Of a DNA stretch of 64,000 bases, positions 7,909-62,429 are shown piece by piece. The stretch is taken from sequence record OR413585.1; one strand, 5' to 3'. Position 1 is the stretch's first letter. Each line of letters begins with the position of its first letter. The notes under the pieces were generated by a model. It had not been told where the DNA came from, did not search any database, and saw nothing but the letters and a program-made list of their open reading frames with translations. Made by a program: the position numbers and the translations under genes.

Positions 7909-7933
7909 TTTCAGATATATATTACCTAGGTGA
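7909..7933 (+). promoter_or_regulatory. Early (virion RNAP) promoter, class A
   Basis: tttcagatatatattacctaggtga, identical at 16412; contains the phiKZ early consensus TATATTAC. Confidence 0.75.
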
Positions 7934-8740: not shown

Positions 8741-8763
8741 TTACGTTAGCCTGAAACCGTATG
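8741..8763 (+). promoter_or_regulatory. Bipartite TTAC-N15-TATG promoter (non-virion RNAP, middle-type)
   Basis: TTAC 8741-44, 15-nt spacer, TATG 8760-63; same geometry at about 11 other intergenic sites. Confidence 0.6.
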
Positions 8764-16411: not shown

Positions 16412-16436
16412 TTTCAGATATATATTACCTAGGTGA
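16412..16436 (+). promoter_or_regulatory. Early promoter, class A
   Basis: tttcagatatatattacctaggtga, identical to 7909. Confidence 0.75.
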
Positions 16437-16487: not shown

Positions 16488-16631
16488 ATGTTAACTCGTA
16501 ACCATAAACGTGCCATCTTCGCCATCGTTGCTGTTGTTGCTTTCGCGGTACTGTCTATCACTGTAACTCAAGATTACAACAAGTGCATCGATAACGGTAA
16601 CTCTGTTGCCATGTGTACAGGTCGCGGCTAA
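16488..16631 (+). CDS. 47-aa early membrane-anchored peptide (not in ORF track)
   Basis: AAGGAG SD; MLTRNHKRAIFAIVAVVAFAVLSITVTQDYNKCIDNGNSVAMCTGRG; TAATG-coupled to the next ORF. Confidence 0.8.
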   Translation: MLTRNHKRAIFAIVAVVAFAVLSITVTQDYNKCIDNGNSVAMCTGRG

Positions 16632-16813
16632 TGGACTTTTCTGATACGCAGTTTGCCGAGTTCTTATCTCACCCGCGTGTTAAACGTGAGTGGGATAATC
16701 TCACTAACGGTGTTCGTCATCAGGACGAAGAAGAAATTGTTCACGTTACCGCGCAAGTCTTACTCGTCTCACCGACAGGTAATGTGTTTCCAATGCAGCA
16801 GGAGATTTACTAA
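16631..16813 (+). CDS. Small early hypothetical protein (60 aa)
   Basis: Start ATG 16631 from the TAATG overlap (track start 16613); TAATG-coupled to the next gene. Confidence 0.7.
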   Translation: MDFSDTQFAEFLSHPRVKREWDNLTNGVRHQDEEEIVHVTAQVLLVSPTGNVFPMQQEIY

Positions 16814-17001
16814 TGGGCGTTTTAGTTAATTACGATGGTAAAAACGGAATCGTGCTTCGCGAAGTGGAAGATAACGAAACAGTAGAGGTGAATCCGCAAA
16901 CCTCAGAACGTACGTTTATCGTGGGGCCGAAAAGCGCACTACCGAAGCCGGACTGGAAAGAAGAGCTGGCGAAGTTCCGTGGGGAACTCGGGAAGAAGTA
17001 G
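16813..17001 (+). CDS. Small early hypothetical protein (62 aa)
   Basis: GGAG SD, TAATG coupling, terminator downstream. Confidence 0.7.
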   Translation: MGVLVNYDGKNGIVLREVEDNETVEVNPQTSERTFIVGPKSALPKPDWKEELAKFRGELGKK

Positions 17002-17013
17002 TATAGATAATTT

Positions 17014-17042
17014 AATACCACCTACGGGTGGTATTATTTTTT
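17014..17042 (+). terminator. Intrinsic terminator
   Basis: aataccacc-tacg-ggtggtatt plus T-tract. Confidence 0.75.
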
Positions 17043-17053
17043 GCCTAAGGAAC

Positions 17054-17476
17054 ATGAAAATGATTAATGAGAAGCTCCAAAAGTATTTAAAGAATGACAC
17101 TGACTGGATGGTTCTTGACCAGTACGGACGATTTGTTCCGCTATCCAAGGATTCCCCTATACCCCGTGACAAGGCGATTTATATTCCTGACGGTAAGGGT
17201 GGCTATCGTTTCTGGGAAGGTCAGGAAGTAAAAGAGGAAATGTTCTACATGGAACCGAAGTTCCGTGCAGCGTTCCCATCGAAAAATATTAACGGCTATG
17301 TTTACAACGCAATTCCGCCAATTACGCATCCTAACTTTGAGGTTGTGAACTACCCCGCAACTGTTCTGGATTGGCAACGTGCCATTAGTGAACACTACAC
17401 GATTCCGCTTGAAGGTGTTTACTTCCCATTCCGTGATATTAGTTTGGACGACTTTATTAACTCTCTTAAGGACTAA
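17054..17476 (+). CDS. Hypothetical protein
   Basis: ATG 17054 with AAGGA SD (track start 16979 crosses the terminator). Confidence 0.7.
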   Translation: MKMINEKLQKYLKNDTDWMVLDQYGRFVPLSKDSPIPRDKAIYIPDGKGGYRFWEGQEVKEEMFYMEPKFRAAFPSKNINGYVYNAIPPITHPNFEVVNYPATVLDWQRAISEHYTIPLEGVYFPFRDISLDDFINSLKD

Positions 17477-17479
17477 AAA

Positions 17480-18340
17480 ATGTACAGCATTACTGATTTT
17501 ATCAAAAGTTCGGATTTCCCCCTACCTCCCAACCACGAAGTATTGGCTAGCGATCCGTTAACCGATGCGGCCATTGTCCAGCTGGACCGCGACAAACGTC
17601 GTACTTATGTCGTGTTGGTCGAAGGGCAGAGCTACGGCCTGTCTTCTTACGACCTGGAGCAGCAAGAGCGTTTCCTCGATGAAAACCGCAAAACGTCAAT
17701 GTATAGCGCTATCTCGCGCGCGTTGTGCAAGGTAATGGCAACGATCACAGACAGCAAAAAGCGCATTGCCGTGCTACAGGGTATCAATGCGCTAACGACC
17801 AAAATCCAACAACTTGAAGGTTTCCATTGCCCACGATTGGAAGCCGCACAGAAGGATGCTAAGGGCGATGAGGCCATGGCACTGTTTGAAGGCAATACTG
17901 TCTTTGCAACAGCTGAAGCTTGTTATCTCACCTATCCAACTTTTAACTATACGCCAATCAGCGACACCGTAGACGGGATTAAAGTAGAGAACGTCGTGCA
18001 ATGGGGTCGCGCAAATCTCAAGTTTGTGATGTCCCATGAAGAAGAAAATCAAGACGGACTTGGGCAGAAGATTCAACGTTGGTTCACGGCGCGTTTGGAC
18101 GCCGACTGGGAAGCGCATGTTAACGCAGAGCTTCGTAAATTTCACGCGGTAGTCGCATTGTTAAAAGAAGATACTCCCGCCCAGAAACAATCGAAGGCAC
18201 CAGTGGTTGGCTGGACGTGTTCCGGCTGTAACCGCAACCATGTCGCTACAGTACCGAGAACCCATCGCTACACTTCGCAGACAATGAACATTGCTTGTCC
18301 GGCTTGCGGTAAGATCAACGAAGTTGATTATAAACCGTAG
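17480..18340 (+). CDS. Hypothetical protein with C-terminal zinc ribbon
   Basis: 286 aa; WTCSGCNR...IACPACGKIN. Confidence 0.7.
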   Translation: MYSITDFIKSSDFPLPPNHEVLASDPLTDAAIVQLDRDKRRTYVVLVEGQSYGLSSYDLEQQERFLDENRKTSMYSAISRALCKVMATITDSKKRIAVLQGINALTTKIQQLEGFHCPRLEAAQKDAKGDEAMALFEGNTVFATAEACYLTYPTFNYTPISDTVDGIKVENVVQWGRANLKFVMSHEEENQDGLGQKIQRWFTARLDADWEAHVNAELRKFHAVVALLKEDTPAQKQSKAPVVGWTCSGCNRNHVATVPRTHRYTSQTMNIACPACGKINEVDYKP

Positions 18341-18345
18341 TAGTA

Positions 18346-18385
18346 CCCCTCTTACCTTCGGGTAAGAGGGCTTTATATTTATTTT
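18346..18385 (+). terminator. Intrinsic terminator (28-nt copy identical to 45743)
   Basis: ccctcttacc-TTCG-ggtaagaggg plus a T-rich tail. Confidence 0.85.
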
Positions 18386-18387
18386 CC

Positions 18388-18427
18388 GAAAAGAAAATAA
18401 AAGGCGCTCTCTCCCGAAGGAGAGAGC
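18388..18427 (-). terminator. Minus-strand intrinsic terminator
   Basis: Minus strand reads gctctctcc-TTCG-ggagagagc then gccttttattttctttt. Confidence 0.75.
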
Positions 18428-18453
18428 TTATTCACATCCACTTAGAGGTTAAC

Positions 18454-18600
18454 ATGAATACCTTTATGCAACAATTGCGCCAGCAACAGCTGAAACAAGT
18501 CGCTTTTCAACAACGTCTGCAAGAGGTTAGCCGCCAACCGCAGACTTCCACCCGTGCCATTAAAGGACTAGGAGGTGACATCATCTTCAATAAGAAGTAA
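18454..18600 (+). CDS. 48-aa micro-protein A (paralog of 18713; not in ORF track)
   Basis: GAGG SD; MNTFMQQLRQQQLKQVAFQQRLQEVSRQPQTSTRAIKGLGGDIIFNKK; ungapped match to B with synonymous codon differences. Confidence 0.75.
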   Translation: MNTFMQQLRQQQLKQVAFQQRLQEVSRQPQTSTRAIKGLGGDIIFNKK

Positions 18601-18712
18601 CACTAACCAGGGGTGTTCGAGCACCCCTTTTAACTCCCGTGACAGTATATCAGTGCATTGTGTACCACCACAATGCAGCGATATGTTAACAGCCTGCCTA
18701 AGGAGGCACTAC

Positions 18713-18859
18713 ATGGAACAACTACGTTCACATATACTTAACCATTACGTTAAGCAAACCCAATTCAACCAACGTGTACAACAGTTGACTGCCCCCAAGC
18801 AGAACACTGTTCGTCGTATCAAGGGTTTAGGAGGTGAGATAATACTCAACAAAAGATAA
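18713..18859 (+). CDS. 48-aa micro-protein B
   Basis: AAGGAGG SD; MEQLRSHILNHYVKQTQFNQRVQQLTAPKQNTVRRIKGLGGEIILNKR. Confidence 0.8.
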   Translation: MEQLRSHILNHYVKQTQFNQRVQQLTAPKQNTVRRIKGLGGEIILNKR

Positions 18860-18993
18860 CATGAAATAACTCTCACCCGAGTGTTCACAGCACTCGGGTT
18901 ATTCCATGCATATAAATACTTCGTCGTATTTTTTTTTGATCTTGGCAGGACGCATAAACTGCCCGTAGGGGAGCCTAAGCTCCCCAGTGTTCG

Positions 18994-20556
18994 TTAGAAC
19001 AAATCATCACCCATTCCACCGGTGAAGAAGTTGATAGACGACGCTGTTACGGTTTCTTCTTTATCACAATCCCAAGGCAGGATGCCAACATCCTGGAAAG
19101 GTATCACTGTGTAGTGATAAGATTCTTTAGTATCGATAATGGTGCGGTGTTTACCGCGTTGAACTTCTAAGAAGCTATGGCCGTTGACCACACGCTTGTT
19201 AAAATACATTTCACCATCGGCCTCGTTATCAAGGCTCGAACAACTATCGTAAAGACCACGACCAGGTAAGTTCTTACAGAAGCCTACCGGGTCTAACGCT
19301 TTTAAGCGTTTACCTTCTGGGGAAATCTGGTGTGGGGCAATTAAGAACCCACGGTTGCGTACCACTTGAATGTTACGAGCAATACGATAAATTTCTTTGA
19401 TATCACTCCCGGCAATGCCGTTGCCGTGTCCTGCTTTGCTGATTGTGCCTAAGTAGTCTGCGCGAATGCCAACAACATGATAACCGCGACGACGTAAGTC
19501 GAGAATAAGGTCGTTGATGTAGTGCACTTTAAAATCGGAGTTGGTGTGCTTTTGGAAAACGTAGTCCCAACCGTTTGCGCGAATCTTACCACAGAGGTAA
19601 TCAGACATTGCTGTTGTGTGTGCTAACTTCTCTTCAGCGGTTGCATCCTGTGCAATGGTCATCTGTGGAACTTGTCCTTCAAAATGACCGTACAGTGCTT
19701 GATAGCCGTAAGCTAAGTTAACGTCGAGTTCGTTTTCTAAACTCAAGTCAAGAATAATTGGTTGCAGTGTGCCCTTCACATCCGCCATTACTTTCTCAGG
19801 CGTGTTGAAGATAGGAATCGATAAGCTCAGTAAGAGACTGAACAAAGACTTACAGTTAAAAGGTAACGCCGGCATAAGCCACAGTTCTTCGGTAATCCCT
19901 TTGTTACAACCGAGCATTTGGTTAATGGCTTTCCAGCCCGTCTGCAAACCATTACCTGCTGCTTTCTTGTTAATCGAGTCGAACACTTTAACAAACGGAG
20001 CCCGATTATCTGTAACCAGCTCACCGACCAGTGATGGAATCTTATTATGAGAGCGTTCACCGAACGTAGATAGCGCCTCTTTGAGTTCGAGCACTGCGGT
20101 GTTCAGATCAACACGTGTCTCAGTTCCATTCAATGCTCCGAACGCGCGACCCATTTTTGTTTTGAGTTCGACGCTCTGTAAACATTGACGTAATTGGAAA
20201 TAATATTGAGACAGTTGTCGATTAAGATGCTCGGTACGTTTGTCTTCTTCCTCGGGCAAATCGTCTTCGAGGAATTTGGTAATCGTATCGTATAGAGGAC
20301 GTACTTGAGTGGTGGCCAGCTTCAAGCGCTTCATAACGCTCGCGTGGTCGTATTCCATGCCGCCGTCTATGATAGATGTGATAATGTCCTTGATCTCGAT
20401 GAGTGCAAAGCGCTCTTCGCCATCTTCCGCATATTCCGGAAGCTTGATCTGCATCAGAACTTTTCTTATGACATCATGATCCTTGCTAGGGTCCGTCAGC
20501 ATAGATTCTGTATACAGTGCGGCTAAGGCGGTTATCAACATCATTTTACTATTCAT
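18994..20556 (-). CDS. dnaB: DnaB-like (SF4) replicative helicase, phiKZ type
   Basis: GLQTGWKAINQMLG, phiKZ-type Walker A ALPFNCKS, ADYLG Walker B, APHQIS, VQRGKHR; sits next to the capsid gene as in phiKZ-like phages. Confidence 0.85.
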   Translation of the reverse strand: MNSKMMLITALAALYTESMLTDPSKDHDVIRKVLMQIKLPEYAEDGEERFALIEIKDIITSIIDGGMEYDHASVMKRLKLATTQVRPLYDTITKFLEDDLPEEEDKRTEHLNRQLSQYYFQLRQCLQSVELKTKMGRAFGALNGTETRVDLNTAVLELKEALSTFGERSHNKIPSLVGELVTDNRAPFVKVFDSINKKAAGNGLQTGWKAINQMLGCNKGITEELWLMPALPFNCKSLFSLLLSLSIPIFNTPEKVMADVKGTLQPIILDLSLENELDVNLAYGYQALYGHFEGQVPQMTIAQDATAEEKLAHTTAMSDYLCGKIRANGWDYVFQKHTNSDFKVHYINDLILDLRRRGYHVVGIRADYLGTISKAGHGNGIAGSDIKEIYRIARNIQVVRNRGFLIAPHQISPEGKRLKALDPVGFCKNLPGRGLYDSCSSLDNEADGEMYFNKRVVNGHSFLEVQRGKHRTIIDTKESYHYTVIPFQDVGILPWDCDKEETVTASSINFFTGGMGDDLF

Positions 20557-21107: not shown

Positions 21108-23405
21108 ATGAAAGATACCCGTATCGCTAGTCTGGACCAGCTGGTTCAGCAGGGCAATGCTCTGGTCGCTGCTGCCAAGGCAGGCTCTTCCGCTAATGAC
21201 GTATGGCAAACCGTAGCCGTTGGCGAATCTGTACGTAAAAATGCTGCCGGCTTCACCAACCTGCGTGACACTGCTCAGCAGCACTACGAAGCTGTAAACC
21301 CTGGCAAAACCATGAGCCACGCTGCTCAGGTTGCTTCTGCGATGATTCTGGCTGCTGCCGGTCACGAAGATGACTTCATGACCCGTGTTGCTGCTGAGAG
21401 CGCGAAGCCGGAATATGCCAGCTACATGCCGATCGCTATTTCCGGTGCAGCATCTCTGGCTGCTGACTACGGTAAAACTCCGCTGGTCGCAACCGAATAC
21501 TACACCAACAAAGACCTGGACAAAAACCTGGGTCTGACCTGGACGCTGAACGTGCGTGCTCTGGAAACTCAATCCAAGTTTGCAGAAACCCTGTTCCCGA
21601 CCATCACTGTGGACACCAACGACGTCGGCATCACCGTTCGTACCAAAGTTACTACTGTAACTCGTGGTATCCTGAACGCCCTGCTGACCAAAGACGTGGT
21701 TGAAGACAACCGTCAGCCGCTGCATAACGCGCTGTCTAACCACAAAGTCCTGCAGGACGATGCTATCCGTATCGTTCCTTACGTGATGGAAACCGGCGAG
21801 AACGCGAAGTTCTTCGTATCCGAAGACATCATCGAAAACGAAAACGTTCAGCTGGGTCGTGTGCCGGCGTATCCGACCAACTACCTGAGCTTCTCTGAAC
21901 GTCGTCTGAACCTGTTCCAGCTGTCTGCCCATCCGGGTATCGTGCAGGAAGGTTACGATGAAACCGACGAAATCGCACCGGGTGCGGCGCTGGGTAGCCT
22001 GCTGCTGTCTGTGCGTAAGCCGACCGAAGAAGCGAAAGATGGTGCGCTGATCAAACTGAACGTACGCGACATGCAGTTCGCTACTTTCCAGCGTCCTCCT
22101 GAAGGTGATGGCCGTGAGCTGGTCCTGCAGTTCCGTCGCACCGTGTTCTCCCTGAACGCCAAGTCTCTGGACTGGAAAGGTGCTGAAATCCCGGCACTGG
22201 CCGCTCTGGCACAGAACGATTACACCATTCGTTATTCCATGAACATCAGCATGTCTCTGTTCACCAACGGTCAGTTCTCTGGTCGTGTTGACGTGACTGC
22301 ACCGTCTCTGGAAATCGAAGGTCTGTACGACGCAACTGGTACTGCTGTTGATATCGAAAGCGGCACCGGCAAAGTGATCATCGACAACCTGAAACTGGAG
22401 CTGCTGGGCTGGCGCTTCGACGGTACTCGTACCAACGAGAACCGGAGAACCCAGGGCCTTCTGCTCGACCCGATTTGGGAACAAGAGAACTACAAACTGC
22501 AGTACGGTTCTCCGATCATGACCAAATCTCCGGTTGGCGTTGAATACGACGACACCGAACGTCTGGACGACCTCGTTTCTGCGGTTAACATCCGTAACGA
22601 AATGCTGGCTATCACTCAGACTCTGTCTTACACCGAAGCGGTTAAGAACGCAGCTGCGTCCATGATCACTCCGTGGGACAAACCTGCTATCCGCGGCCTG
22701 GGCCGTCACTGGGTTGCTCCGTGGTACAGCGAAAGCGACTACGAAGTGGACAAAGTGATCCAGTCTCTGGATACCAAAGATGCGCTCATCAACGCCCGTC
22801 AGGGTCTGGTACAGCGTATCGGTGACCAGGTAACTCGCGCTATTCAGGACTCTCGCTTCATGCCGGCTCTGCGCCTGCTGACTGCGGACCCGAACGCACT
22901 GCCGAAAGTTGTTATCGCAACTGACGAACCGACTGCTGCAATGCTGCTGCTGGTTCAGGGTGACCAGCGTCTGCTGGGCGATCGCTACGAGTACGAAGTT
23001 ATCACCACCAACGATGACCGCTGGCGTGTGAAGAACGAAGCTGACGGCAGCTGGACTCGCCGCCTGCAGTGGGTTCTGAAAGTTCCAACCGCTGATGATG
23101 GTTCTTACTGTGTTCTGAACTGGGGTAACCACTTCTGGTCTCCGATCATGGTAACCAACATCAACATCCAGCGTAACGGCGCTACCAGCAAAGAGCTGGC
23201 AGTACAGCCTCGTAACGCGCACATCTGCCACTGCCCGATCACTGGTCTGATCTGGATTAAAGGTATCACCAAGTTCGTGGAAGAGAAACTGGCGTTCAAC
23301 GTCACTACTACTTCCAACGGTACCGGCGGTACTGACGGTGGTAATGCTGGTGATGTTGGCGGCGGTACCCAGCCAGGTACTGGCGGTGAAGGCGCTGGCG
23401 GCTAA
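21108..23405 (+). CDS. Major capsid protein (phiKZ gp120/SPN3US gp75-like)
   Basis: 765 aa, strong codon bias, propeptide ending PLVATE-130, Gly-rich C-tail, strong terminator downstream. Confidence 0.9.
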   Translation: MKDTRIASLDQLVQQGNALVAAAKAGSSANDVWQTVAVGESVRKNAAGFTNLRDTAQQHYEAVNPGKTMSHAAQVASAMILAAAGHEDDFMTRVAAESAKPEYASYMPIAISGAASLAADYGKTPLVATEYYTNKDLDKNLGLTWTLNVRALETQSKFAETLFPTITVDTNDVGITVRTKVTTVTRGILNALLTKDVVEDNRQPLHNALSNHKVLQDDAIRIVPYVMETGENAKFFVSEDIIENENVQLGRVPAYPTNYLSFSERRLNLFQLSAHPGIVQEGYDETDEIAPGAALGSLLLSVRKPTEEAKDGALIKLNVRDMQFATFQRPPEGDGRELVLQFRRTVFSLNAKSLDWKGAEIPALAALAQNDYTIRYSMNISMSLFTNGQFSGRVDVTAPSLEIEGLYDATGTAVDIESGTGKVIIDNLKLELLGWRFDGTRTNENRRTQGLLLDPIWEQENYKLQYGSPIMTKSPVGVEYDDTERLDDLVSAVNIRNEMLAITQTLSYTEAVKNAAASMITPWDKPAIRGLGRHWVAPWYSESDYEVDKVIQSLDTKDALINARQGLVQRIGDQVTRAIQDSRFMPALRLLTADPNALPKVVIATDEPTAAMLLLVQGDQRLLGDRYEYEVITTNDDRWRVKNEADGSWTRRLQWVLKVPTADDGSYCVLNWGNHFWSPIMVTNINIQRNGATSKELAVQPRNAHICHCPITGLIWIKGITKFVEEKLAFNVTTTSNGTGGTDGGNAGDVGGGTQPGTGGEGAGG

Positions 23406-24245: not shown

Positions 24246-24311
24246 TTACGTTACGGGCACTGGGTATGAACCCGTGCCCAAAGTAATCTGAGATAGATAT
24301 TATCTACGTGA
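24246..24311 (+). promoter_or_regulatory. Tandem promoters: TTAC-N15-TATG (24246-68) and class B early motif (24287-311)
   Basis: Both repeated motifs are present upstream of 24345. Confidence 0.55.
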
Positions 24312-25349: not shown

Positions 25350-25360
25350 GGGAGGCCGGT

Positions 25361-27139
25361 GTGTTTAAAGATGCGATTAGGAAGATTAAAGAGGCAGGCG
25401 AAATAGTGCCTTTTAATCGTGCAATTGCAGAAGGAGTTGGGTACACACAAGCTAAAGATGGGATACATGATCGTGTGGCAACCATTCTACGTCGTGAGTT
25501 GACGTATGATGAAATCGATAACCCGAAATTACCAGAAGGGTTAACGGTATTAGGTTGTCGCCAAATGTCGCCGTTTGAAGCTTTTATCTTTAAGTTATCG
25601 AAGTCGGATAACAATTCACGAAATAATCGTGGCCGGTCAATTATTAACATCTCATCCACTGACACGTATATGGTAATGGCCTCGTTCCGAGTTCCAGGCG
25701 ATCCTCGCCCGGTGCAACGACCAATGAGCCTGCCGTTTATTCGTCGTGGCGGCTTAATGAACTACTACGGTACAACGTACCACGTAGCACCTGTAATCCA
25801 TCAACCTGGTATATGTCGTGAGCATGGTGGTATCTTTATTAACTTTGACTTCACCCGCAAGGTGTCTATCAAGTTCTGTAAGAAACCAACGAAGATTCTG
25901 GTGAATGGTCGCCCTGAGCAGCTGTTCTTGCCAGGCACGTCGAATCTGTTTGTCTCAACTGGACAGATTGGACACGACACCGATGAGAAGCCACTGATGT
26001 ATTGGCTCTTTGGGCGTTATGGCTTTAAACAAGCCGTGAAGCGTTATGCGGGCGTTGATGTGACGATTTGGCCAGCGATTAAAGTACGTGATGTGGACTT
26101 AACGAAGTATGTGGTGATTCAATCTGGTGAGCCACAACTCGCGAAGACTATCCAGTACGTGCTGTTGGTTAAACGTGAAGATATGCCTAACACCGATGCA
26201 GGGCGTTGGGATCAAAACGAACATCTGTTGCTGGTAGCGACTGCCGCATTCTTCAAAGCGGCGCACTATTACGCAGGTAAACAGAACAGTAAGAACGGTC
26301 GTGCACCAACACTGCCGGGGCTGTTTACACAGATTAATGAAATGGCAATGGACGAAGATATTGCAAACCTCAACTCTGCAGCGTCTTGGCGTGAAGTGTT
26401 GGGCCGCAGTATTCGCGGACTGAAGCCTTCGGATATCGAACTGAGTCGCAGTATGGACAGCCACTTCCAGGAATGCGAACGCTATGTCAACAGCACCTTC
26501 CGTGGTGAGCTGATGGCAAACGATCCGTCCATCCCTGATGATTTGGATATGTTTGATTTCCTCTGGTACACCACGCAGCTGATGGTACGCACTCGACTTA
26601 CCAAGCAAGATGATATTCCGTCTATGTACGGAAAACGTCTCACGGTAACCGATTACTTACTGTTGGGCCAACGTGGCTTTACCACAACGATCTCGAAAAT
26701 ACGTTGGAAGCTGGGGCAGTTGGAACATCGGACTCCAGAGACAGCGGCGAAGTCTATTCGAGACGCACTGAACAAACAGATCGTGCTCAATCTGGTGATG
26801 CGCACCATTACGAGCAACGGCGGTATCAGTTTCTTCAATGCCTCTACAGAATCAATGGTATTGGCAGTGTCTACGCACGCCATCGGTCAAACCGAAACCG
26901 ATGCTAAGCGTTCGAAGAAAGGAGGCAAGACCGTTAACTTGAACGACCGTACTAAGCACGCATCCGCGTCGCATCTGGAATGTGGTAACGTCTATTATAT
27001 TCCTAAGTCGGCACCGTTTAAGGCGAACATCCTCAACCCGTACATGAAGACCAACCCAAGTTTGGTAATGATGCGGAATCCTAAACTGGACCCGTACATC
27101 AGACCGACCGAAGAAGACATTGCTAAAATCGGCCGCTAA
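25361..27139 (+). CDS. Non-virion RNA polymerase beta-like subunit (phiKZ gp123-like)
   Basis: 592 aa; MSLPFIRRGGLMNYYGTTYHVAPVI resembles RpoB region A; conserved position downstream of the capsid gene; GGAGG SD. Confidence 0.75.
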   Translation: MFKDAIRKIKEAGEIVPFNRAIAEGVGYTQAKDGIHDRVATILRRELTYDEIDNPKLPEGLTVLGCRQMSPFEAFIFKLSKSDNNSRNNRGRSIINISSTDTYMVMASFRVPGDPRPVQRPMSLPFIRRGGLMNYYGTTYHVAPVIHQPGICREHGGIFINFDFTRKVSIKFCKKPTKILVNGRPEQLFLPGTSNLFVSTGQIGHDTDEKPLMYWLFGRYGFKQAVKRYAGVDVTIWPAIKVRDVDLTKYVVIQSGEPQLAKTIQYVLLVKREDMPNTDAGRWDQNEHLLLVATAAFFKAAHYYAGKQNSKNGRAPTLPGLFTQINEMAMDEDIANLNSAASWREVLGRSIRGLKPSDIELSRSMDSHFQECERYVNSTFRGELMANDPSIPDDLDMFDFLWYTTQLMVRTRLTKQDDIPSMYGKRLTVTDYLLLGQRGFTTTISKIRWKLGQLEHRTPETAAKSIRDALNKQIVLNLVMRTITSNGGISFFNASTESMVLAVSTHAIGQTETDAKRSKKGGKTVNLNDRTKHASASHLECGNVYYIPKSAPFKANILNPYMKTNPSLVMMRNPKLDPYIRPTEEDIAKIGR

Positions 27140-37886: not shown

Positions 37887-38368
37887 TGCTTGTTATTAAT
37901 GTGGTCGAGGATAAGATTCCCGCGAATGTTTATCCTGAACTGGTTGAATGGGTGCGCGACTTAAACAGTATCCGCGAGGAGCCTATTAAACTCACGATGT
38001 TTGTTGAGGATGATATCGTGCGGGGAATCATGGCATGGGAACCTGGCCATTTGGTCTATATGGTTGTGCCCGAGGAATCGCGACGCGGCGGCGTCGGCAG
38101 ATTTATGCTTAAGTATCTTCAGCAGAACTCCGATCGTAAACACATCAGCTGTCGTGTTCACCCGACCAACATTCCCGCGCTAGGATTCTTTCACCAACAA
38201 GGCTTCCAGATTGACCGATGGTATATTGCTGCTGACGGCCAACGGTATTTTCGTATGACGAACTACAATGTTATTTCGTCACACACGCCGCCGGAGGAAA
38301 AGCTTTTAACTCATTACGCTGAAAGCGTTCCCATTTTTCTTTCGATGGCAGAAGGTCATTTCGTCTAA
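37883..38368 (+). CDS. GNAT-family N-acetyltransferase
   Basis: MVVPEESRRGGVGRFML (AcCoA motif A), RVHPTNIPALGFFHQQGF (motif B). Confidence 0.85.
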   Translation: MMLVINVVEDKIPANVYPELVEWVRDLNSIREEPIKLTMFVEDDIVRGIMAWEPGHLVYMVVPEESRRGGVGRFMLKYLQQNSDRKHISCRVHPTNIPALGFFHQQGFQIDRWYIAADGQRYFRMTNYNVISSHTPPEEKLLTHYAESVPIFLSMAEGHFV

Positions 38369-38385: not shown

Positions 38386-38862
38386 ATGATACGTGTTGCT
38401 TACGAAACACGAGATACGGATGGAACCCGTATAAACGTCATCCGCCGTGTGGAGCTTGTTCCTCAGCATGAACTGAATATTGCAGACAGTTCGCTTAGGG
38501 GCACTCCTGTTAAGATTCTGAATCTTACGAGATGTTCTTTTCATCACAGTAAGACATCACCAGCAATACGGTCCAGTAAAAGAAAAAGTTATGCCGATTT
38601 AAAACGTCGGTTGTCCCGGCATTTTCGTCGGAGTGCCTGGAAGGCTTTAGTTGAGGTTTTGGTCGACGAGCACCTTATCCAGAGGTTGGAGTGGGAAGAA
38701 GTTCTCAAGGAAGCGGGCTATCCAACAAAACCTTTCTCTTATCACTGGCATCACTTCAAAAAACAGTTCCATGATGCCTTACAGGTATCGCCAAACACCC
38801 GCAACATGATTCACCGTTTGGAGAAAATGGACTGGCTTCTACCCTATCTGGAAGAGGACTAG
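38386..38862 (+). CDS. Hypothetical basic protein
   Basis: 158 aa, in operon. Confidence 0.65.
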   Translation: MIRVAYETRDTDGTRINVIRRVELVPQHELNIADSSLRGTPVKILNLTRCSFHHSKTSPAIRSSKRKSYADLKRRLSRHFRRSAWKALVEVLVDEHLIQRLEWEEVLKEAGYPTKPFSYHWHHFKKQFHDALQVSPNTRNMIHRLEKMDWLLPYLEED

Positions 38863-38864
38863 AT

Positions 38865-39254
38865 ATGATGCGTGCTGTATTAGCTGTGTTTATAGTCTGC
38901 GTTACTGCGCCAGTAAACGCCTTTACCATTCAGGACTTCCCGCAGTATAAACCGATGTGGGAAACCGACGCACCTGTAAAATTTAGCGACAAAGATGAAC
39001 CAGTCGTGACAGTGGTGAAGGGTGAGTTTGCCGTGGTCAACTACGGGCGTTCTGAACTGTGTCCGGGCGGTGGCTTTTATCTCGTTAACACAAAGCGCAA
39101 GACGTACCAGCCAATAGATGCCGGTACGTGTTCGCCGAAAGTTAAAGCGACAATTGTCCCGTCAGTACGAACACACCGCAGCGTTAATACCCACCAGTTA
39201 ACTTTTTGGGTAGGTAAAGAAATTTCCGCGCGGTATCCTTTGTACGATTATTAA
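38865..39254 (+). CDS. Secreted/periplasmic protein
   Basis: Signal peptide MMRAVLAVFIVCVTAPVNA|F; two Cys in the mature part; GAGG SD. Confidence 0.7.
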   Translation: MMRAVLAVFIVCVTAPVNAFTIQDFPQYKPMWETDAPVKFSDKDEPVVTVVKGEFAVVNYGRSELCPGGGFYLVNTKRKTYQPIDAGTCSPKVKATIVPSVRTHRSVNTHQLTFWVGKEISARYPLYDY

Positions 39255-45740: not shown

Positions 45741-45745
45741 TTGTA

Positions 45746-45783
45746 CCCCTCTTACCTTCGGGTAAGAGGGTATTGTCTTTTTT
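45746..45783 (+). terminator. Intrinsic terminator (identical to 18346)
   Basis: ccctcttacc-TTCG-ggtaagaggg. Confidence 0.8.
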
Positions 45784-61910: not shown

Positions 61911-62429
61911 GTGAATATTACCATGAACCTGTACACCAAACGGGAACGTAACGTTTTAGAATCTGGCGTTGCACCGGAAGTATTGGCTGCGGGGGATATT
62001 AGTATCGACCCACTGAAAGTGAAAGTCGCGGAACTGTTCCCTCGTGATGAATGGGACATCTGGTATTTCCGTTGTTCGTCGGTATTGAATGCAATCAAAC
62101 AACTGTCTGATTATCAGCCTGGCCCGTACATCGGTACCTGGCACTGGTACGTCCCACGCACCCCAAACTTCCTCTACTTACACGATGACGATAAACGCAC
62201 TCATATTCGCACTGTAGCGACGCCTGAGCGTTTGGAGCGTTATCTGGGGTTAATCCACGACCGTCCTCGTAACGAGCTGCAAAGCATCGTAGAAGTGCTC
62301 AGACAGGTACCTTTAGATGGTATCCTGGAACTGGACATGAAAATTGCTGATCGGCCTCGCCACTACTGGGAATTTTCCTGGGTAGATGCGAAATACGAAA
62401 ACCATAACGTTATCTATCTGAAGCGTTAA
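61911..62429 (+). CDS. Hypothetical protein
   Basis: 172 aa, AAGGAG SD, GTG start. Confidence 0.75.
   Translation: MNITMNLYTKRERNVLESGVAPEVLAAGDISIDPLKVKVAELFPRDEWDIWYFRCSSVLNAIKQLSDYQPGPYIGTWHWYVPRTPNFLYLHDDDKRTHIRTVATPERLERYLGLIHDRPRNELQSIVEVLRQVPLDGILELDMKIADRPRHYWEFSWVDAKYENHNVIYLKR

Follow-up and report, generated by a model that had tools for sequence, protein, structure and literature searches.

Two short open reading frames (ORFs), each encoding 48 amino acids (aa), lie in tandem within a 64,000-nucleotide (nt) stretch of the genome of Salmonella phage SPLA5c (record OR413585.1; this whole stretch is referred to below as the window, and its base 1 is base 62001 of the record). SPLA5c, a jumbo phage of the SPN3US type, belongs to Seoulvirus and is related to phiKZ; the 3.2-kb stretch surrounding the pair is 100% identical to the SPLA5c record and 97–98% identical to SPN3US and its relatives. 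The two ORFs, termed copy A and copy B, form a cassette within a terminator zone, where the plus-strand gp66–gp70 operon meets the minus-strand gene for a DnaB-like replicative helicase head-on. A first-pass annotation, made from the sequence alone, had described them as paralogous micro-proteins in a structured island with a probable antisense transcript, and had proposed for them a post-transcriptionally gated system with a logic like that of type I toxin-antitoxin modules. The analysis presented here confirms the two ORFs as real paralogous genes, with selection acting on the protein; they belong to a family that is already catalogued and has no characterised function, and the locus is a modest curiosity, not a toxin-antitoxin system. 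The two genes are as follows.

18454–18600, plus strand: copy A, 48 aa, an annotated coding sequence (CDS; WNT48572.1), with a ribosome-binding site (RBS), GAGG, at 18445–18448.
18713–18859, plus strand: copy B, 48 aa, an annotated CDS (WNT48573.1), with the RBS AAGGAGG at 18700–18706.

Tandem paralogues under selection

The pair had been thought invisible to standard gene callers, which is incorrect: both ORFs are annotated CDSs in SPLA5c, in SPN3US (YP_009153365.1 and YP_009153366.1) and in approximately 30 other records. Both also match PHROG 18219, a family with no assigned function, along their full length, residues 1–48 falling on profile positions 1–48 (E 5.6e-26 for copy A and 1.4e-26 for copy B). 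Nothing distinguishes the window proteins from this family, to which they belong; the libraries and papers searched have no record of its function, structure or expression. The SPN3US orthologues are 94% identical to the window proteins.

The paralogy of the two copies, and the claim that their shared residues are written in different synonymous codons, were both borne out. Aligned without gaps, copy A and copy B have 19 of 48 residues in common (40%; BLASTP E 6e-13), and the repeat unit measures 259 nt, the two units aligning across the ORF and the core of the hairpin downstream of it. Identity at the DNA level is only 54%, with a proportion of differences at synonymous sites (pS) of 0.76, that is, saturation, against 0.40 at nonsynonymous sites (pN; Fisher p 0.001). 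Among orthologues, the ratio of nonsynonymous to synonymous divergence (dN/dS) ranges from 0.08 to 0.40, the latter being the value for copy A against SPN3US copy A, and the synonymous excess reaches a Fisher p of 3e-8; synonymous sites in the micro-ORFs are free to vary, dS being as high as 2.5. A short Logan contig that holds both ORFs is uninformative on expression.

The pattern of reading frames bears on whether these are genes at all. Given a region so rich in conserved hairpins, it might be supposed that what is conserved is an RNA or terminator structure and that the reading frames are incidental, but this is scarcely credible: the hairpins lie outside the ORFs; the RBSs are kept in every lineage compared; the synonymous excess is significant; and in none of the 19 family members (from 15 phages) does a stop interrupt the sense frame, which remains open for 47–49 codons across three genera at 52–86% nucleotide identity, whereas each of the other five frames is broken by stops in most or all members. 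Selection on the protein, as originally suggested from codon usage, is therefore supported from these comparisons of sequence.

A basic micro-protein with a conserved C-terminal motif

All 19 members are hydrophilic and highly basic, with an isoelectric point of 10.6–12, a net charge of +5 to +9 and a grand average of hydropathy of about −0.9. None has a membrane segment, the best 19-residue Kyte-Doolittle mean lying between −0.18 and −0.61, and this tells against the toxin-antitoxin likeness proposed at first pass. The N-terminal halves are divergent and the C-terminal motif is fixed: the invariant positions are a Gln-Arg pair in the helix and Lys-Gly-Leu-x-Gly-x-Ile near the C-terminus; position 40, the second Gly of the turn, is retained by 10 of 11 members. 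AlphaFold2 was run independently with copy A and with copy B as target, and both runs predict a helix over residues 2/3–26 with a predicted local distance difference test score (pLDDT) of about 83, followed by a flexible linker and a beta-hairpin formed by residues 34/35–38 and 41–44/45, the turn being Gly-Gly (pLDDT about 55–63). Read from the sequences, hydrophobic residues of the helix appear to recur on a 3–4 spacing, in the manner of a coiled coil, and the helix is predicted to be amphipathic.

Homology searches for function returned nothing significant from Pfam, NCBIfam, PADLOC or PDB sequences; PADLOC gave no match even at E 10, and NCBIfam gave a single match far under its cut-off (14 bits versus 163). 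The AlphaFold2 models likewise had no Foldseek match in PDB or BFVD. Two candidate likenesses were rejected. The ribosomal protein uL29 was the top PDB sequence match, at only E 0.67 and 13 bits; Pfam uL29 matched none of 11 members at E 10 and there was no fold match. A KH domain or helix-hairpin-helix, as the Gly-x-x-Gly turn might suggest, had no profile match, and a chain of 48 aa is too short for either fold.

Distribution and copy number

By tblastn the family is found in 42–43 phage records, and its range is restricted to Seoulvirus, Machinavirus and Wellingtonvirus. An exhaustive search of 1.84 billion representative proteins with a hidden Markov model (HMM) recovered three true clusters, of the Seoulvirus A/B type, the Machinavirus type and the Wellingtonvirus type; a fourth HMM match, the repeat protein P0025, was judged spurious. 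IMG/VR contributed two loci, both in known genomes, and no new relative, and the E. coli genomes and plasmids searched contained no match to the family. The position of the micro-gene is the same in every carrier, with the gp70-like gene (or its equivalents) on one side and the convergent helicase gene on the other. The same slot is found without the cassette in Asesino (Erskinevirus), Caitlin (Machinavirus), Kwan (Wellingtonvirus), CR5 and Phobos (Derbicusvirus) and a Vibrio phage, the spacer there being only 62–205 nt. Because close relatives have the slot and not the cassette, the cassette is to be regarded, on comparison of these genomes, as accessory, and as having been gained or lost within genera.

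Two copies are present in six phages (SPLA5c, SPLA3, SPLA1a, MET_P1_082_240, Proteus phage 7 and SPN3US), and one copy in most other Seoulviruses. In SEGD1 and phage 1252 the one gene present is of copy A type as far as a 10-nt stretch common to both copies (within the Leu-Gly-Gly codons) and of copy B type thereafter; such chimeras carry the signature of unequal recombination, which would have deleted one 259-nt unit. In Escherichia phage Lh1B, five N follow directly after the single micro-ORF, at the point where copy B would start; this suggests an assembly gap or collapsed repeat, and the copy number of that phage is therefore uncertain. The SPFM records (Salmonella phage SPFM1, 6–10, 12, 15 and 20) were left out at this locus. 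In these, the locus is broken into as many as 40 BLAST pieces, with scrambled products of 65–68 aa that include fragments of copy A, which looks like sequencing or assembly noise and not biology.

Hairpins and terminators

Fold significance was expressed as an energy z-score relative to shuffled sequence. The region 18341–18993 folds far better than its shuffles, with z of −9.2 and −7.7 on the two strands, and contains the following elements besides the genes.

18347–18370, plus strand: intrinsic terminator of the upstream operon, with a 10-bp stem, UUCG loop and T-rich tail (−17.9 kcal/mol, z −4.5).
18378–18401, no strand assigned: AT-rich palindrome, an inverted repeat, which supplies the U-tails of both back-to-back terminators.
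18406–18427, minus strand: intrinsic terminator, with a 9-bp stem (6 GC pairs), UUCG loop and U-rich tail (−17.9 kcal/mol, z −4.1).
18609–18628, plus strand: hairpin after copy A with UUUU behind it, a terminator or attenuator (−13.5 kcal/mol, z −3.4), homologous to the one that follows copy B.
18647–18684 (core 18654–77), no strand assigned: long imperfect hairpin between the copies (−18 kcal/mol, z −3.9), 29 nt 5' of the start of copy B.
18860–18908 (core 18875–18899), plus strand: extended hairpin after copy B (−20.3 kcal/mol, z −5.6 on both strands).
18929–18964, no strand assigned: run of nine T and a stem-loop box with 5-bp arms (18944–48/18960–64), part of the helicase 3' region and not of the cassette; conserved in alignment.
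18968–18985, minus strand: hairpin directly 3' of the helicase stop, without a U tail.

The hairpins that the first-pass annotation had seen after each ORF and between the ORFs are all recovered here, as is its minus-strand UUCG terminator, and the hairpin beyond the helicase stop has no U tail, in keeping with its remark that no U-tailed minus-strand terminator follows that gene. The order of elements is kept in all cassette-bearing phages of the three genera, each unit consisting of an upstream hairpin, an RBS, 47–49 codons and a downstream hairpin. The stem of the plus-strand terminator has compensatory changes at 7 of 10 pairs among nine phages, and the hairpin after copy B has three pairs with double compensatory changes beneath an invariant GTG/CAC top, again among nine phages; the AT palindrome is near-invariant in the three genera. 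The hairpin at 18427–18406 has a counterpart in the corresponding position in all 9 cassette-bearing phages compared, from the three genera, built from four different stem sequences with compensatory changes; by sequence, it has the GC-rich stem-loop, U-rich tract and conserved structure of an intrinsic terminator. It is separated from the plus-strand terminator by 36 nt. The hairpin between the copies holds the same place relative to copy B as the minus-strand terminator does before copy A, and has a U tail on neither strand. The run of nine T, the stem-loop box and the tail-less hairpin also stand in the same order in Asesino and Caitlin, which have no cassette.

Two structural claims did not survive. 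The 'structured island' proves to be the local norm, because most of the listed spacers carry such elements: a GC-rich hairpin with a T-run occurs in about 19 of the 27 listed window spacers of at least 45 nt, and these are ordinary terminator or attenuator hairpins. Sequestration of the Shine-Dalgarno sequence of copy B in a 5-bp stem (18695–18708) is not distinguishable from chance, at z −0.95 with 38 of 200 shuffles as good, and the stem is present at copy B only. Rfam offered only spurious miRNA-like matches, on the back-to-back terminators.

Two further observations concern these elements. The 28-nt sequence of the plus-strand terminator (18343–18370) is repeated exactly at 45743–45770, 27 kb downstream (none expected by chance), and is a possible recombination substrate. 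The stem-loop box (18944–18964), whose 10–11-nt loop reads TTTATG on the minus strand, is conserved after the helicase stop in Seoulvirus, Machinavirus and Erskinevirus, with or without the cassette.

Flanking genes and transcription

The cassette is preceded on the plus strand by an operon whose genes occupy 16488–18340, the last of them at 17480–18340, and is followed by the helicase gene on the minus strand. The flanking genes and candidate promoters are listed below.

16416–16436, plus strand: early-promoter-like 21-mer at the head of the upstream operon; exact repeats at 7913, 16416 and 45832, and a further site at 24291 with 3 mismatches (none expected by chance).
18909–18912, minus strand: TATG box, candidate core of a phage RNA-polymerase promoter directed antisense into the ORFs; invariant in all cassette-bearing phages aligned, with variable flanks.
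18994–20556, minus strand: convergent gene for the DnaB-like replicative helicase (Pfam divDNAB, E 1.2e-124; GenBank annotation).
21108–23405: major capsid protein gene, phiKZ-type; like the helicase gene, a neighbour in keeping with an SPN3US-like phage.

The 286-aa gene at 17480–18340 appears from gene order to be the orthologue of SPN3US gp70, reportedly an essential, non-virion protein; gp71, gp72, gp73 and gp74 are without mention in the same source (PMC5105663). The C-terminal tail of the 286-aa protein is zinc-ribbon-like (CxxC...CxxC), and the protein has a weak match (E 0.002) to a PHROG annotated 'translational regulator'. In Machinaviruses, the region of this gp70-like gene is divided into two genes.

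The 21-mer is AT-rich, and all four of its sites are on the plus strand in spacers preceding gene blocks; by its likeness to the AT-rich early class of phiKZ it is probably the early-promoter class of SPLA5c, and the site at 16416 is the nearest plausible source of plus-strand transcripts entering the micro-ORFs. No plus-strand promoter was found between 18371 and 18453 using the 21-mer, the AT-run/TACG/TATG pattern described below or k-mer enrichment, the last of which, applied upstream of genes, yielded only RBS and early-promoter words. A plus-strand TATG before copy B was dismissed as a promoter, not being conserved in SPN3US, SPLA3 or MET_P1. In the window it is common for a gene to follow a terminator without any promoter being visible in between, as in the spacers before 9389, 17060 and 28907.

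A pattern consisting of an AT-run, T(W)ACG, a spacer of exactly 14 nt and T[AG]TG was observed on the plus strand at 8742, 15246, 24247, 37200, 44168, 45056, 47390 and 61178. These eight sites are mostly in spacers immediately before genes, and recall the middle-promoter element of phiKZ joined to the start motif TATG. The combination of A-run and TATG was rejected as a recurrent promoter: in its strict form it occurs once in the window, and the A-run is an old terminator T-tail that is found in cassette-less phages also.

On the minus strand, the first-pass annotation had taken the U-tailed terminator, and the want of one directly after the helicase gene, to imply an RNA antisense to both ORFs. 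In the cassette-less Asesino and Caitlin, the sole U-tailed minus-strand terminator after the helicase is a shared bidirectional hairpin, second in order and further downstream; helicase transcripts would therefore pass the first, tail-less hairpin. The terminator at 18427–18406 is real, and compensatory changes have preserved it; transcription of the minus strand across both ORFs is accordingly likely, most simply through read-through from the helicase gene. The antisense RNA is to this extent plausible, but no discrete antisense promoter could be shown.

Other features of the window

Two observations lie apart from the cassette. An ORF of 158 aa (38386–38862, plus strand), which may be an unannotated gene, takes up most of the 499 nt left without a feature in OR413585.1 from the end of one CDS at 38368 to the start of the next at 38868. 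The CDS annotated 'polymerase' (25565–27139) is preceded, in 25350–25564 on the plus strand, by an in-frame GTG at 25361; a start there would add 68 codons and remove a 215-nt 'spacer' that resembles coding sequence.

Discussion

The explanation that we consider probable, with appreciable room for doubt attaching to the package as a whole, is that the two ORFs are functional, translated genes and old tandem paralogues, encoding a basic, oligomerising accessory protein that binds nucleic acid or a partner, and that their expression is shaped by terminator read-through and by convergent transcription of the helicase gene. The product would be a soluble, strongly basic peptide with a predicted amphipathic helix at its N-terminus, a short linker and a C-terminal beta-hairpin with an invariant Gly-Leu-Gly-Gly at the turn. 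Its mode of action would be to bind either nucleic acid or an acidic protein partner, with the helix probably mediating assembly into homo- or hetero-oligomers, and the benefit that it confers would be dispensable, not a core function. Plus-strand expression would arise by read-through of the upstream terminator; on the other strand, helicase transcripts would pass the tail-less hairpin, cross the cassette antisense and end at 18427–18406. The overlap of sense and antisense would be mainly a result of the convergent layout and may damp or time expression of the micro-protein, without constituting a toxin-antitoxin switch. Since synonymous sites vary freely, any antisense effect would operate by plain complementarity.

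Several points weigh against this account. The plus-strand terminator at 18347–70 looks strong, and the hairpin at 18406–27 could also stop plus-strand RNA, so that read-through may be too weak and a plus-strand promoter that has gone unrecognised may exist. Helicase transcripts might end at 18968–85, depending on how the phage RNA polymerases treat hairpins without a tail. The C-terminal beta-hairpin is predicted at low pLDDT (about 55–63). Finally, the searches found no homologue of known function or fold, and the proposed binding role is consequently argued from charge and predicted shape.

Competing explanations differ chiefly in what they make of the minus strand and of the peptide. A dedicated antisense RNA might start at its own promoter, the TATG at 18909–12, and end at 18427–18406, giving an RNA of roughly 500 nt, or about 240 nt where the phage has a single copy, which would base-pair with the mRNA of the micro-ORFs and govern the translation or the stability of that mRNA. 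In its favour are the conservation of the minus-strand terminator and the TATG itself, which is situated just outside the post-ORF hairpin, is invariant in every cassette lineage and is missing from cassette-less spacers. TATG with a start at the G is the necessary core of phiKZ late promoters, those of the non-virion RNA polymerase; it is not sufficient in that phage, where an undefined downstream context is required too (PMC4666361), and the motif occurs often in the genome. Antisense RNAs with defined starts are likewise known from phiKZ, together with six regions of bidirectional termination between converging genes (bioRxiv 10.1101/2023.10.13.562163). The site near 18909 comes close to the pattern of the eight plus-strand sites, but its spacer is 12 nt where all eight have 14; its TACG element and the distance to the A-run (16–23 nt) are not conserved in other genera; the A-run is accounted for by the old terminator tail; and with dS up to 2.5 such an RNA would have no conserved sequence of its own. 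On balance we regard a dedicated antisense RNA as unlikely. More doubtful still is an extension of the idea, in which the cassette is a self-contained two-strand unit, mobile in and out of the helicase 3' region, with a new class of basic helix-plus-beta-hairpin micro-protein on the plus strand, binding nucleic acid or a replication or host factor, and on the minus strand an antisense RNA from the TATG promoter that sets the window of expression.

A type I toxin-antitoxin-like module, in which a toxic peptide is held in check by an antisense RNA, as in hok/sok or tisB/istR, is highly improbable. The cassette does offer small ORFs under a minus-strand transcription path, with stable hairpins around them. 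It differs in having hydrophilic, highly basic peptides with no segment near the hydropathy of a membrane helix, only a candidate antisense promoter, and two tandem protein copies on a single antisense path; copy number varies freely, the cassette is simply missing from sister phages, and neither PADLOC nor NCBIfam offers a match. The setting is moreover a strictly lytic jumbo phage, to which an addiction mechanism would be of no evident use. That the peptide is an effector of counter-defence or host takeover, blocking a host immune or housekeeping factor, would be a narrower form of the explanation that we favour and does not exclude it. Patchy distribution, variable copy number and a divergent N-terminus joined to a fixed motif are typical of phage accessory effectors, and the family shows all of these in its accessory occurrence, its one or two copies and its divergent N-terminal halves. 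Against this, it has no similarity to any catalogued protein in Pfam, the PHROG functions, PDB, PADLOC or NCBIfam (libraries that do not include anti-defence proteins), and the family is basic, unlike many known small inhibitors, which are acidic. We would entertain the effector role tentatively, as an unlikely possibility that the searches neither favour nor discount.

Returning to the accessory-protein explanation, its layout has partial parallels elsewhere. The bidirectional terminator regions of phiKZ similarly bring two opposed terminators close together between convergent units (bioRxiv 10.1101/2023.10.13.562163), but here a gene cassette of 260–520 nt keeps the minus-strand gene apart from the U-tailed terminator that serves it, and the minus-strand 3' region consequently overlaps coding sequence of the opposite strand. 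PHIKZ117.1–117.4 of phiKZ are a cluster of four small ORFs that also follow a DnaB-like helicase gene, next to the gp119/major-capsid pair; they differ in sharing the strand of the helicase gene, and did not emerge as sequence relatives, protein and profile searches having returned SPN3US-like phages only. (ORF 117.2 is 96 nt long and ORF 117.1 is 210 nt.) In phages of the phiKZ/SPN3US group, the stretch 3' of the helicase gene seems to accept small accessory genes generally. Moron-like cassettes bordered by regulatory stem-loops are known elsewhere, for example the mobile cassettes of T4-type phages. The SPLA5c cassette resembles these in comprising a compact ORF between hairpins, present or absent in sister genomes and changed in copy number by recombination, but shows no evidence of hairpin-mediated transfer, and its slot is always the same.

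What is new here is at the level of annotation, namely the paralogy, distribution, predicted shape and regulatory layout of the family, and includes no new mechanism. Jumbo phages of the phiKZ/SPN3US group nonetheless contain many unexplained small genes, very few of which have been tied to any activity, and this pair is a clean case for follow-up, being short, under purifying selection, accessory, variable in copy number and marked by a sharply conserved C-terminal motif. The locus also presents, in compact and natural form, a coding cassette within the 3' overlap of convergent units, in a phage with its own RNA polymerases, and it could help to define termination by these polymerases and the interference between them.

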